A model generated the notes under the pieces. The model ran no database searches. It was not told the DNA's origin and saw nothing but the letters and a program-made list of their open reading frames with translations. DNA of 64,000 nt from contig NC_086112.1 in the NCBI RefSeq assembly GCF_963921235.1, positions 42,532,001 through 42,596,000 of the forward strand, given 5' to 3'. The DNA comes from Mobula hypostoma (Eukaryota). Every line of letters starts with the position of its first letter. Position 1 is the first letter of the stretch. The position numbers and the translations under genes are program-made. Below, piece by piece: positions 41,968 to 58,729 of this stretch.

Positions 41968-41998
41968 TTACAAGAACTGCCCAGAGTACTGCCTCACA
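41968..41998 (-). CDS. HNRNPK: hnRNP K terminal coding exon (SVRQYSGQFL*)
   Basis: Acceptor cttttctttcacag; resembles the mammalian SVKQYSGKFF tail. Joined CDS is 1239 nt = 412 aa. Confidence 0.92.
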
Positions 41999-42037
41999 CT
42001 GTGAAAGAAAAGACAGAATTAAGACTTTGGAAGCCAT

Positions 42038-42068
42038 TTACAAGTCCCTCAGCTTACTTTGACCCACA
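42038..42068 (-). CDS. HNRNPK: Candidate alternative hnRNP K C-terminus (SVGQSKLRDL*) from an acceptor 70 nt upstream
   Basis: ttgtcttttgcatttaagttag|TGTGGGT...TTGTAA; same length, start (TGTG) and end (TTGTAA) as the canonical tail. Confidence 0.5.
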
Positions 42069-42260
42069 CTAACTTAAATGCAAAAGACAAGCCATCAGCC
42101 CTTGGTTTAAAGTTTACATCTCCTTACAATCTACTGGTGTAAGGAACTTCATGATAACAGGTCCATACTACACTCAAATTATACCTAATCCTGACCAGAA
42201 AACACTATCTGACATTAAAAACAAACTGTGCTCTCACAGCATGCATTTAAAACAATTCAC

Positions 42261-42595
42261 TAGTGCTGGGTCGAAATTTTGATATACTGAACTTCTAAAG
42301 GAAATATTTGCCTTCAGAGGTCAATAGCAATATTGCACACCCAATTGTTCACAAATTCAATTCCCCAAAATTGACCCTTTCCACCACCAAAACAAAAACG
42401 TTCCCGCTACCAAACTGACCTTTTCTCGTGTGGAGCTGCGGTATCTGAACGCACGGGTCAGCTTAAGGGCGCAAAGCGGCTGCTGTAGCTGCACTGGGGA
42501 GAAACCAGGTAAAAAAAAATAAACTAATTTGACCAAACATTTTTGTTTTCAATGAATGTTCGGATGCGAGTGCAGATCAATTCGACCCAGCACTA
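42261..42595. repeat. Perfect 15-bp inverted repeat bracketing a candidate exon
   Basis: TAGTGCTGGGTCGAA at 42261-42275 and TTCGACCCAGCACTA at 42581-42595. Confidence 0.9.
42420..42493 (-). CDS. HNRNPK: Candidate 74-nt cassette exon giving C-terminus SAATAAALRP*
   Basis: Acceptor tttttttttacctggtttctccccag, donor AAG|GTCAGT, in-frame TAA at 42465-42463; CpG-retaining sequence inside an AT-rich intron. Confidence 0.6.
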
Positions 42596-42715
42596 AAATT
42601 TCAGTTAACCAAAGCTTGTGTATATGAAAGGACAGCACAGCAAGATGAACAGAAAATGGTAGTTTGCTGTTGCAGAACTTTTGAGAATTAAACTTATTGG
42701 AACAAAAGTTCTTGA

Positions 42716-42818
42716 GAGGTATGATCTGCGCTATATGGCAGACTGTGATTTGTTGTCAATCCAACTGTCCAAAACAACAAAATCACTAGTCTTCCACACA
42801 GAACCAGACCAAATTCCA
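42716..42818 (-). ncRNA. MIR7-1: miR-7-1 precursor hairpin in the last HNRNPK intron
   Basis: 5p arm TGGAAGACTAGTGATTTTGTTGTT at 42796-42773; 3p arm CAACAAATCACAGTCTGCCATA at 42755-42734; established host-gene position. Confidence 0.97.
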
Positions 42819-43095: not shown

Positions 43096-43266
<171 letters not shown>

Positions 43267-48657: not shown

Positions 48658-50148
48658 CTGAAAGTTGTGTGTGTTTTTTTAAAAATATCAAGCTTTACTG
48701 ATTTTTCTGGCACTTAACTTCTTTAGTTTCTGAATTAACTTTCCTAGTTAACAGTTGGCAATTCATTTAATCACCAGTCTTATCAGCACAACTGAAATCT
48801 TCAGTAACTAAGCCATGCTACTTACCTTTCATACAAATAAAATTAATCCAAGTAATCTCTAAACAAGAAGTTTCAATTTATAACCAAATTGCAAAACTAT
48901 GAAGTTGTACAAAGTGGTGACTTAAGTTCTTTACTTTGAACTCTAGGTAACAAAGCACCTATGCAATATAAGTTAGGGCACAAAAGACAGGATCAGCATC
49001 TGTGCAGAGTAGAAAAATCAACAAGTTTGAACTGCTCTACAGAAGCTATTAATTCAGATTCTGAAAATTGTACCCTCTTGAAATTTACTTTACTTTACAC
49101 CCAACTACAATATTTAATTCTCAGAAAAAAATATCAGAAAGGATATACAACTTCTTACACAAGAACAGAGACCAAGCCTTCTGATATGAACCATACACTT
49201 ATTCGAAAATCTGCTGGATCCTAATTAGTTCAAAAAATTTTCTCCCTGGTAGAGTTGGCAGGTGTAGAAAATGTTAAGGTGGGAGGTAAAAAAACAACAG
49301 CACAGCCAAGGGATTTTTAAACAATGACTAGTAAACACGTGGCTTTGTTGAACCACTAACCAATTCGAGTATAAACGGGCAAGCAGAAATACAGGAATTT
49401 TGATAAACTGAAAACTGGGTTGTTGGCACTGGTGTACAAGGACAAGCACAAAGGATTTAATGGCTGAGGTACAAATCTCAGGTGGAAGGAACTCAGTGAT
49501 CACATGCGTGTGGGTAACAGCAGAATTTTAAGATGTATTCCAGGTCATATATATTAGACAAAAACTATAATCACAGAAAAATATGCTTGGATAAGGGATG
49601 GAAAAATGACTAAGGATGAATAATGCAGATCACTCAGATGTTACTTGCAAATTGGCCCTGAATGAAGCAGAAACTTCATTGGAGAATACAAGGGCAATTA
49701 TAGGATGCATGTGAGACATTCAAGCACCCCAAAGACAGGATGAAGTTGTTATTAATGGGATGGGGAAGTCAACTGTCCAAAATCAGAATGAGATGCAAGG
49801 AAAGTTTTGTGATCACAGGGAAAACAACTTGTTACCAATACGGCAGCTTCTACTTCATCCATTATAAGCTACCCAAATTCCTCTTACACTGGAGCATGGT
49901 GATGCCATTCCTAGCCTCGGCTTTCAGTTAGGTTTTCATTTTAAGAATGGTCTGTAAAACACTGATTAAACTGTACATTTCATCAATCCATTAAAACATA
50001 CAACATTAAGCACACAATATACAGGACTGATAGAAAACGCAAGCAATATTCAAATGCTAGTTTTTAAATCAGCCCTTAGATCAATAGCTATATAATAAAA
50101 AAAAGGAAGAAAAGCAAAACATACAAGAACCAGGGCTAAGACTACTAC

Positions 50149-56782: not shown

Positions 56783-58729
56783 ATGATTTCTGCAAGAGTA
56801 GAAACATGGCTGGAAGCAACATGGCATGTCAAAGTTCCTTCGCATTGGCTTCAAGCATGCTTAGATTGGATTCAACAAGAGAACCAAGGTACTAATTTAA
56901 CACAGGCCGTTATCAATAAACAAGTATTTGAGCAATGGCTTCTTACTGACCTCAGGGATCTGGACTACCAAATTTTGCCAGATGGAATCTCAGAAATGCA
57001 TAAAAGTGAGCTCAGTGGATTTTACTGTTTGCAAGTTGATTCATTGGTTGATGTCAGTCAACCTGCATACAGCCAGCTGCAAAAAGTTAGGGGTAAGGAC
57101 ATCACTAATGAACAAGTAACTTCAACAGAAATATCTCAGAGATCTTGGGAAGCCAAACCAACTAGAATGTTAATGTTGCAATTAACTGATGGAGTCCAGG
57201 AGCTCCAAGCAATGGAATACCAACCTGTAACTGCTCTTCATTGCAACCTATCACCGGGCACAAAAATCTTGTTGCTGGGTAATATTGCTTGCCGATTAGG
57301 AGTCCTGCTGCTGAAACCTGAAAATGTGAGGGTCCTTGGGGGTGAAGTGGAGACCCTTGTGGAAGAAAATTCCAAAGAGAGAATACTTGCAAGGTTAATT
57401 GGAGAATCAGATGATGCTGCTGTAACAAGAATGAATAGTAATGGTCAACCTATTGTTGAAAGGACTAATGGGATGCCACTACTGCTGGAACCTTCCGATG
57501 ATGAGCTATTAGCTGGCTTTGATGATGATGATCTGTTTTTGGACCCCAATTTGGATTCTGAAAGTGGATATGGTAGTAAGACAGGCAATTTGAGCAGTGT
57601 CTCAGATAGTATACAGCACCCAATCAGTGCTCTGGATGATCAAGAGCAACACAGGGAGTGCCAGTCATCACAAATGTCCAGAGAATTTCGAAGCGAAGAT
57701 TTACAAGACAATGTTGATGAAGATTTTGATGAGTTTCCCTTGGATGAACTTGATGATGATTTGTTTACTACGGAAATGGAGCCAACTGGAGAAATAAATA
57801 AATCCCCTAAATCTCACATATTGTTAGCAGGGGAATTGCAGAGAAGTAATAAAAGATGCATTGAATTTGTGGGAGAAAATAGCAAATCTAGCCTATGTCA
57901 AGAGCCAAGTGTAAAAGCTGTTGATATCTGTTCTGACCAGAGGTTACAAAGCCATCTTAAACATTTTACAAGCAGTAGATATACTGAAAATGCAGAGGAG
58001 TGTTCCATGCTAGGTAATTTAAATACTCAAAATTCACACTGTTTACTAAGAAAATCAGGCATTAACTCTGTGGATAGAAATATAAATATTGCCACTATGG
58101 AACAAGAATATAAACAGCATGTGGTATGTGACCTCCCTGACAAGAGACTATTTCATGTCACTAATTCTGAAAATGTGTATGTTACATCTGAATTAATTAG
58201 AAAATCTTCCAGCAGTGGAGATAGTAGTAAACAAACTTGTGAGCAAATAGGCAACTCAAAAGGAACAAGATATCACAGTGGTTCAATAGAATTGAAATCT
58301 CCACCATTTACATATCTAAAAATTCTTTTGGATAAGAAGCCTGATGTAAAAACTGTGGTACAAATCAAAGGCTTCATTGTTACATTACTTGACAAACTTA
58401 CAAGTAATAGTGGTCTTTGGAGCATCAGAGCTAAAATATCAGATGGTACTGCCTACATGGATGTGGAACTTGAGGATGACATTTTAAGAAATCTAATTGG
58501 TTTCTCAGTAGATGAAATGAGAGTCTCAATAAAATGCCCCAACAAACAGAAAGAAGTGACTGCAGGGTTGCAGAAATGCCAACAGGAGTTGGTGGACCTT
58601 TGTTGTCTGATGACCATTGAATTTAATCCAATTCTTACTACTGCTAGAATTGTGACTCTCCATGAAGTAAGTGTAGATGATCTACAAGCATTGAAACATC
58701 GTGTACACAAAGAAAAGATTGTTAGATAG
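56783..58729 (+). CDS. RMI1: RecQ-mediated genome instability protein 1 (BTR complex), single coding exon, 648 aa
   Basis: WLQACLDWI, VFEQWLLTDLRDL, RMLMLQLTDG..AMEYQP (OB1), acidic linker, C-terminal PPFTYL...ISDGTAY (OB2). Acceptor cttcag at 56737; AATAAA at 58827-58832. Confidence 0.96.
   Translation: MISARVETWLEATWHVKVPSHWLQACLDWIQQENQGTNLTQAVINKQVFEQWLLTDLRDLDYQILPDGISEMHKSELSGFYCLQVDSLVDVSQPAYSQLQKVRGKDITNEQVTSTEISQRSWEAKPTRMLMLQLTDGVQELQAMEYQPVTALHCNLSPGTKILLLGNIACRLGVLLLKPENVRVLGGEVETLVEENSKERILARLIGESDDAAVTRMNSNGQPIVERTNGMPLLLEPSDDELLAGFDDDDLFLDPNLDSESGYGSKTGNLSSVSDSIQHPISALDDQEQHRECQSSQMSREFRSEDLQDNVDEDFDEFPLDELDDDLFTTEMEPTGEINKSPKSHILLAGELQRSNKRCIEFVGENSKSSLCQEPSVKAVDICSDQRLQSHLKHFTSSRYTENAEECSMLGNLNTQNSHCLLRKSGINSVDRNINIATMEQEYKQHVVCDLPDKRLFHVTNSENVYVTSELIRKSSSSGDSSKQTCEQIGNSKGTRYHSGSIELKSPPFTYLKILLDKKPDVKTVVQIKGFIVTLLDKLTSNSGLWSIRAKISDGTAYMDVELEDDILRNLIGFSVDEMRVSIKCPNKQKEVTAGLQKCQQELVDLCCLMTIEFNPILTTARIVTLHEVSVDDLQALKHRVHKEKIVR

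Follow-up and report, generated by a model that had tools for sequence, protein, structure and literature searches.

The most probable reading of the HNRNPK locus of the ray Mobula hypostoma, to which we assign a probability of roughly 0.8, is that a cassette exon specific to cartilaginous fishes (cassette 1; positions 42493-42420, minus strand) splits the intron hosting mir-7 and brings about a productive swap of the C-terminal tail of hnRNP K, which removes the equivalent of human Tyr458, and that a second candidate acceptor further downstream (AG ending at 42069) is idle. The locus lies in a window of 64,000 nt (contig NC_086112.1 of assembly GCF_963921235.1, forward-strand positions 42,532,001 to 42,596,000), to which all positions refer.

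The HNRNPK locus and the acceptors behind the KH3 donor

The locus is the HNRNPK orthologue. Stop-free pieces of the minus strand between approximately 50200 and 43100 spell an hnRNP K, and the Mobula isoform of the window contains a ROKNT domain (E 1.8e-11) and three stretches of KH_1 (E 1.6e-46; Pfam). The large HNRNPK exon of the window is identical to that of Mobula hypostoma isoforms, whose exons map at about 100% (tblastn). Isoforms X2, X3 and X5 were mapped exon by exon onto the window and end in cassette 1 (42495-42466). Further differences among these isoforms are a segment of eight residues, SSLSPGSC, behind the first coding exon (50123-50146, minus strand), and a TLQ insertion and a DLALYGR segment (minus strand, around 46284 and 44600), which are further small alternative splice choices within HNRNPK. 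The single-exon open reading frame of RMI1 (56783-58729, plus strand; 648 aa, with three RMI1 Pfam domains) is located head-to-head upstream of HNRNPK, and the same arrangement is present in the hoazin, sterlet and chimaera loci.

A full-length mir-7 precursor hairpin (42722-42811, minus strand; Rfam RF00053, 85 bits, E 9e-18) occupies the intron that follows the KH3 exon and is separated from cassette 1, further downstream, by 229 nt. HNRNPK is known as the host gene of mir-7 in mammals, and the position of the hairpin shows that this holds in a ray too. The donor of this intron is GC in whale shark, chimaera, sterlet and hoazin (CAG/GCAAGT or GCGAGT, with the slash at the junction) and GT in three batoid lineages (Mobula, skates and sawfish). 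Tails of the type R-Q-V... or R-H-V..., which are annotated in many fish and bird proteins, represent read-through of the GC donor; one of them, the salmonid intron read-through tail RHVLAPFPRLR, belongs to a cluster of 423 sequences. The teleost endings of this type dominated the first protein census and were dropped as annotation products.

The KH3 exon (43097-43266, minus strand) has a length of 170 nt, comprising 56 codons plus AG; it carries a KH_1 domain (Pfam), and the Mobula hypostoma isoforms match it at 100% over 43266-43099 (tblastn). Its 3' end encodes ...AQYLLQN (...CAA AAC AG), and its GT donor (43096-43095) is common to all tail variants. The minus strand was read and every AG 3' of this donor was scanned as a potential acceptor (99 AGs between the donor and 41400). 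The AGs ending at 42494, 42069 and 41999 place the first exon base at 42493, 42068 and 41998, respectively, and open the frames SAATAAALRP*, SVGQSKLRDL* and SVRQYSGQFL*. The scan thus reproduced exactly the three acceptors of the original prediction, each of which opens a stretch of 31 nt that starts with TG, ends with TAA and encodes Ser + 9 aa. The spacing of 70 nt between the acceptors at 42068 and 41998 was likewise recovered, as was an additional AG (42074-42073), 4 nt upstream of the middle acceptor, which would lead to the ending ...NS*. The C-terminal peptides of the hnRNP K endings (...LLQNSAATAAALRP, ...LLQNSYSSRFAPLS and ...LLQNSVRQYSGQFL) correspond to a tryptic C-terminal peptide of about 30 residues.

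Frames of exactly 10 codons open behind eight of the 99 AGs by chance, so that an equal tail length is weak evidence when taken alone. One of these eight (first base 42488, SYSSRFAPLS*), which was absent from the original prediction, is a genuine annotated acceptor. Since equal-length open frames behind AGs are this common, conservation or transcript support is needed before they are read as tails.

An internal exon with two acceptors

Cassette 1 is an internal exon of 74 nt (42420-42493, minus strand), which is delimited by an acceptor AG at 42495-42494 and a donor GT at 42419-42418 (...GAAAAG/GTCAGT). The frame opened by this acceptor encodes S-AATAAALRP and ends with TAA at 42465-42463, 43 nt before the junction. 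A second acceptor is located 5 nt downstream of the first (CAG/TGCAG/; AG at 42490-42489) and gives a 69-nt form of the exon, whose frame starts at 42488, encodes S-YSSRFAPLS and ends with TGA at 42460-42458, 38 nt before the junction (42458-42488, minus strand). The sequence CAGTGCAG at this tandem acceptor is invariant in elasmobranchs. The arrangement resembles NAGNAG acceptors in that both AGs are annotated in several species, but differs from the 3-nt spacing of NAGNAG sites; with a spacing of 5 nt, the choice of AG changes the reading frame, yet each frame runs for exactly 10 codons before its stop inside the exon.

The splicing pattern of cassette 1 is documented by transcripts of relatives. 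Eight skate contigs from five SRA accession series are spliced mRNAs of 1.9-2.3 kb, and all eight lead from the KH3 exon (...CAAAACAG) through a cassette of 73 nt into the terminal exon (TGTGAGGCAGTAC...; TGTGAGGCAG). Because these mRNAs show the cassette between the KH3 exon and the terminal exon, cassette 1 has its own donor, and this donor is spliced to the third of the predicted acceptors. A skate isoform that ends in tail 1 (the ending of the first frame) is represented by 13 Logan contigs, among them these eight, and a search with the KH3 exon matched an ab initio model of a carpet-shark-like relative, in which the cassette is present in another frame. Of the sequence words in a largely intronic stretch, a fraction of 0.2-0.74 was present in RNA-like sequencing runs; such shares mean retained intron or pre-mRNA and therefore cannot tell the acceptors apart.

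The endings of 65 elasmobranch isoforms were compiled from word-index protein searches and cluster look-ups, and the resulting numbers are annotation counts rather than quantification. Tail 1 (SAATAAALR[P/S/T] or SAASAAASRP) accounted for 43 of the 65 isoforms, the canonical ending SVRQYSG[Q/H/E]FL for 18, and the ending of the second frame (tail 1b, SYSSRFA[P/H/L]LS) for four, which are annotated in four species (Rhincodon, Pristiophorus, Amblyraja and Mustelus). The middle ending SVGQSKLRDL was represented by 0/65. Annotations of cassette 1 cover at least 16 elasmobranch species, the three Mobula isoforms that map to the window among them; the taxa in the census include Mobula, Hypanus, Hemitrygon, Pristis, Narcine, Amblyraja, Stegostoma, Rhincodon, Chiloscyllium, Heterodontus, Pristiophorus, Cetorhinus, Carcharodon, Scyliorhinus (two species) and Mustelus. 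Some species, for example of Amblyraja, Cetorhinus and Narcine, have annotated isoforms of both kinds, with the cassette included and with it skipped. With an acceptor and a donor of its own, and with products of both inclusion and skipping in the transcripts and annotation of relatives, cassette 1 has the properties of an alternative cassette exon.

The tail encoded by cassette 1 is therefore real, but the exon is internal and is not a duplicated terminal cassette. The donor seen in the skate mRNAs overturns the earlier description of cassette 1 as a terminal stretch. Its proposed origin by serial duplication of the terminal cassette was rejected as well: the global alignment of the two cassettes had a score of -2, which was equalled by 6.5% of shuffled sequences. 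The cassette isoforms are already present in RefSeq models and GenBank entries; full-text searches for hnRNP K isoforms, for ADVEGF/SGKFF and for the shark or chimaera HNRNPK exon retrieved no literature description of these isoforms of cartilaginous fishes.

The conservation of the exon was assessed by comparison with the genomic loci of two skates, whale shark, sawfish, chimaera, hoazin and sterlet, and positions were counted as invariant when identical in all five elasmobranchs (Mobula, two skates, whale shark and sawfish). Alignments, local BLAST searches and folds of the intron covered window positions 42700 and below. Invariance was 96% in cassette 1 (97% in its coding part and 95% in the part after the stop), 82% in its upstream and 85% in its downstream flank, 94% in the terminal coding stretch and 31% in the neighbouring intron. 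The near-invariant flank on each side of cassette 1 has a length of approximately 170-180 nt.

A homologue of the cassette is present in the chimaera (blastn, 78% over 212 nt, E 3e-40), where a 73-nt exon encodes SCSSFFMTS* with the stop 45 nt before the junction; it shares the pyrimidine tract and the donor context. The ending SCSSFFMTS was found in 6/6 chimaera proteins, two of which, AFM85585.1 and AFK11166.1, are GenBank entries and not gene models; a full-length cDNA project of the elephant shark (PMC3466250) may be the source of these two entries. Between chimaera and elasmobranchs the peptide differs, and the position of the stop, the half of the exon after the stop, the splice sites and the flanks are kept. 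The few changes among the elasmobranch cassettes all alter an amino acid (P to T/S, T to S and L to S). Given both observations, there is no sign of selection on the peptide beyond the constraint at the nucleotide level.

No homologue of cassette 1 was detected in the hoazin or sterlet loci by local blastn of 42690-42230 (no hit below E of about 0.1), and judging from these two loci the exon appears to be missing from bony vertebrates. Its presence in both chimaera and elasmobranchs makes it at least as old as the common ancestor of the living cartilaginous fishes, which dates back roughly 400 million years.

The terminal exon and the stretch preceding it

The terminal exon starts at 41998 and encodes the canonical tail S-VRQYSGQFL, with its TAA at 41970-41968 (41968-41998, minus strand; 94% invariant as given above). 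This tail is orthologous to the SVKQYSG[K/R]FF of bony vertebrates, and the exon becomes 3' UTR when cassette 1 is included. In teleosts, a second tail S[V/A]LHLLGH[K/E/Q]D is annotated beside SVKQYSGHLL/RFF, both consisting of Ser + 9 aa, and the tail of the gar reads SVKQYSADVTRF. A branch-point-like TTAAT (42018-42022, minus strand) places its A about 20 nt upstream of the AG of the terminal acceptor, inside the 70-nt middle stretch, and this CTAAT/TTAAT motif is kept in 5/5 elasmobranchs.

The middle stretch (SVGQSKLRDL*, 42038-42068, minus strand) had been predicted to be one of three alternative tails, which the comparison does not support. It is absent from the census. In place of its AG, both skates have AA and the whale shark has GG; the sawfish, which keeps the AG, has lost the stop through a 1-nt insertion. 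Its invariance of 37-38% matches that of neutral intron, as represented by the neighbouring intron, and no trace of the stretch was detected in the chimaera locus. The middle AG is only the second AG after its sole yUnAy motif, and its longest pyrimidine run has a length of 6, as against 9 and 11 at the real acceptors. The stretch contains the branch-like motif and the pyrimidine tract of the terminal acceptor, and on these comparative grounds it is most likely the non-coding 3' end of the intron. Some 55 nt upstream of the terminal acceptor, all five elasmobranchs share the 13-mer TGGGTCAAAGTAA (42066-42054, minus strand) without a change, and the chimaera lacks it; the 13-mer resembles a 5' splice site (AAA/GTAAG), and the surrounding intron is fast-evolving.

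The middle acceptor might instead be a young, minor splice site of the Mobula lineage, which yields low levels of SVGQSKLRDL, or of the ...NS* ending from the AG 4 nt upstream. The window does have an AG, a branch-like CTGAT motif 26 nt upstream of it and an open frame of 10 codons, and the AG is kept in the sawfish. However, none of the three Mobula isoforms uses this acceptor, its pyrimidine tract is weak, the competing AG would give an immediate stop, and the stretch is conserved at the neutral level only. We consider such a site highly unlikely and regard the acceptor at 42069 as idle.

The amniote tandem-acceptor architecture, which the original prediction had invoked as precedent, is as described: in the hoazin, two acceptors are located 61 nt apart and each is followed by TGTGAAGCAGTAT, giving the endings ADVEGF* and SGKFF*. 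The hoazin tails thus arise from a tandem duplication of the acceptor together with TGTGAAGCAGTAT, and both retain SVKQY and hence Tyr458. In the ray, the position matching the amniote proximal copy is non-functional intron; the middle stretch has neither the conserved AG and frame nor the annotated or transcribed isoform that mark the duplicated cassette of amniotes. The middle and terminal cassettes nevertheless share TGTG...CTTGTAA and agree in 16/31 ungapped positions, with a gapped score of 9 that is reached by 0.02% of shuffles; this pair was chosen post hoc, its T-rich tracts inflate the score, and the middle stretch encodes SVGQS and not SVRQY. Because the alignment beats the shuffles and the hoazin has a true duplicated acceptor, the middle stretch may be what is left of an ancient, since decayed duplicate of the terminal acceptor region.

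These results bear on the reading that the locus contains three working terminal cassettes, which arose by serial duplication of one and are constrained to a length of exactly Ser + 9 aa. The three predicted frames are present, the middle and terminal cassettes align better than shuffled sequences, and in amniotes a duplicated acceptor cassette does precede the terminal one. Yet cassette 1 is internal, is followed by a donor and shows no sequence relationship to the terminal cassette, and the middle tail is represented by none of the isoforms, its AG and stop varying among species. The constraint on exact length does not hold either, as the length of the real tails varies between Ser+8 (chimaera cassette) and Ser+11 (gar), and frames of 10 codons are frequent by chance. 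Taken together, this leaves hardly any probability for three duplicated cassettes. The larger tail repertoire that had been anticipated stands insofar as cassette 1, through both of its AGs, adds endings to the two-tail picture; the part that relied on the middle tail is not supported.

Probable consequences of cassette inclusion and its proposed regulation

In the preferred reading, that of a cassette exon which swaps the tail productively, the three annotated endings behind the one donor are products of skipping and of inclusion at either AG. Skipping joins the KH3 exon to the acceptor with first base 41998 and produces the ancestral tail SVRQYSGQFL. Inclusion ends the frame inside the cassette, the first AG giving SAATAAALRP and the second SYSSRFAPLS.

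Poison exons are ultraconserved, autoregulatory cassette exons of genes for RNA-binding proteins. Exon 4 of SRSF3 is mentioned as such an exon (PMC10321290). Like exons of this kind, cassette 1 is frame-breaking, contains stops and is conserved together with long intron flanks. Cassette 1 could accordingly be a poison exon itself, with a premature stop through which hnRNP K lowers its own mRNA by nonsense-mediated decay and with peptides that are mere by-products. An exon of 73 or 74 nt that breaks the frame, has stops in two frames and is ultraconserved with its flanks in a gene of this kind has the features by which autoregulatory poison exons are usually recognized; a C-rich CTCCCC patch, of the kind bound by hnRNP K, is also present in the conserved pyrimidine tract, and the chimaera and elasmobranch peptides are not conserved. 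Nonsense-mediated decay, however, is triggered by stops that precede the last exon-exon junction by more than 50-55 nt, and the stops of cassette 1 fall below this distance in all three lineages, with 43 and 38 nt in the window, 42 nt in skates and 45 nt in the chimaera. The cassette mRNAs are moreover represented by full-length contigs in eight skate runs and by the GenBank form of the chimaera, which is unexpected for a target of decay. We therefore regard a poison exon as quite unlikely.

Since no more than 38-45 nt separate the stops from the last junction and the included form predominates among the assembled mRNAs and the GenBank entries, the cassette-containing mRNA is probably translated. 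It would then escape nonsense-mediated decay and yield protein, i.e. it is probably productive and not degraded, and in this respect cassette 1 differs from the poison exons of RNA-binding proteins: it is probably a productive tail swap rather than a switch for decay.

In human hnRNP K, SVKQY ends with residue 458, a tyrosine. Once this residue is phosphorylated by c-Src, mRNA binding is lost (PMC9701828). The tyrosine is absent from tail 1 and from the chimaera tail. In AlphaFold models of KH3 with either tail 1 or the canonical tail, the last helix extends to residue 78/80 in both, with pLDDT values of 77 and 72 for the tails of the two models; because the last helix is alike in both, tail 1 looks structurally compatible. 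The protein made from the cassette mRNA would thus keep the C-terminal helix of KH3 and be devoid of the tyrosine equivalent to human Tyr458, which may alter its function.

Isoforms a and b of amniote HNRNPK (...SVKQYADVEGF and ...SVKQYSGKFF) resemble the ray isoforms in using the same KH3 donor and the mir-7 host intron, and in both groups a tail of about 10 residues is swapped after ...LLQN-S. In contrast to amniotes, the additional tails of the ray are encoded by an internal exon that is unrelated and has a donor of its own, and they remove the tyrosine. The alternative C-termini of cartilaginous fishes thus differ from those of amniotes in mechanism and, through the loss of the tyrosine, in consequence, as well as in lineage.

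The non-coding parts of the cassette region are as conserved as the coding parts, which makes regulation of cassette 1 at the RNA level probable. A repeat search identified an inverted repeat of 15 nt around the exon, with an upstream arm at 42581-42595 and a downstream arm at 42261-42275 (both minus strand), located 88 nt upstream and 145 nt downstream of cassette 1. The arms are 100% complementary (15/15) and invariant in 6/6 cartilaginous fishes (the five elasmobranchs and the chimaera). The chimaera intron has a large deletion between the arms, which are kept. The predicted duplex has a free energy of -27.2 kcal/mol (-30.1 kcal/mol with its extension) and closes both the MFE and the centroid fold (z = -2.5). 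Conserved complementary intronic boxes that flank alternative exons are known to loop them out via a long-range RNA duplex, and cassette 1 has such boxes on both sides, which pair in the predicted folds. It differs from the known cases in that the stem is without covariation, as the arms never vary; looping is accordingly putative, as is the direction of its effect, be it skipping or inclusion. The choice between inclusion and skipping would then be set at the RNA level, and the 15-nt stem may loop the exon out and favour skipping. An inner AT-rich pair of 14 nt (42536-42549 and 42389-42402) was also considered and rejected: the whale shark loses three of its pairs without compensation and the chimaera has neither arm, so that it is probably not a conserved helix.

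A more far-reaching proposal would be a switch specific to cartilaginous fishes and some 400 million years old, made up of the cassette, its flanks and the 15-nt stem close to mir-7, which couples processing of the host intron, possibly including cropping of mir-7 by Microprocessor, to the choice between a tail that can be regulated by Src and a tyrosine-free tail, with the tyrosine-free form as the main hnRNP K. We consider this extension speculative and rather unlikely.

Much work has been devoted to hnRNP K as a regulator that binds RNA and DNA, and a whole class of vertebrates appears to use, perhaps mainly, a form of it that ends differently and has no tyrosine of the Tyr458 type. This amounts to a natural experiment, and a comparison of the hnRNP K tail forms would reveal the role of the tail. 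The exon, its flanks and the stem beside mir-7 also constitute a compact, extremely conserved system for the effects of RNA structure and miRNA processing on splice choice.
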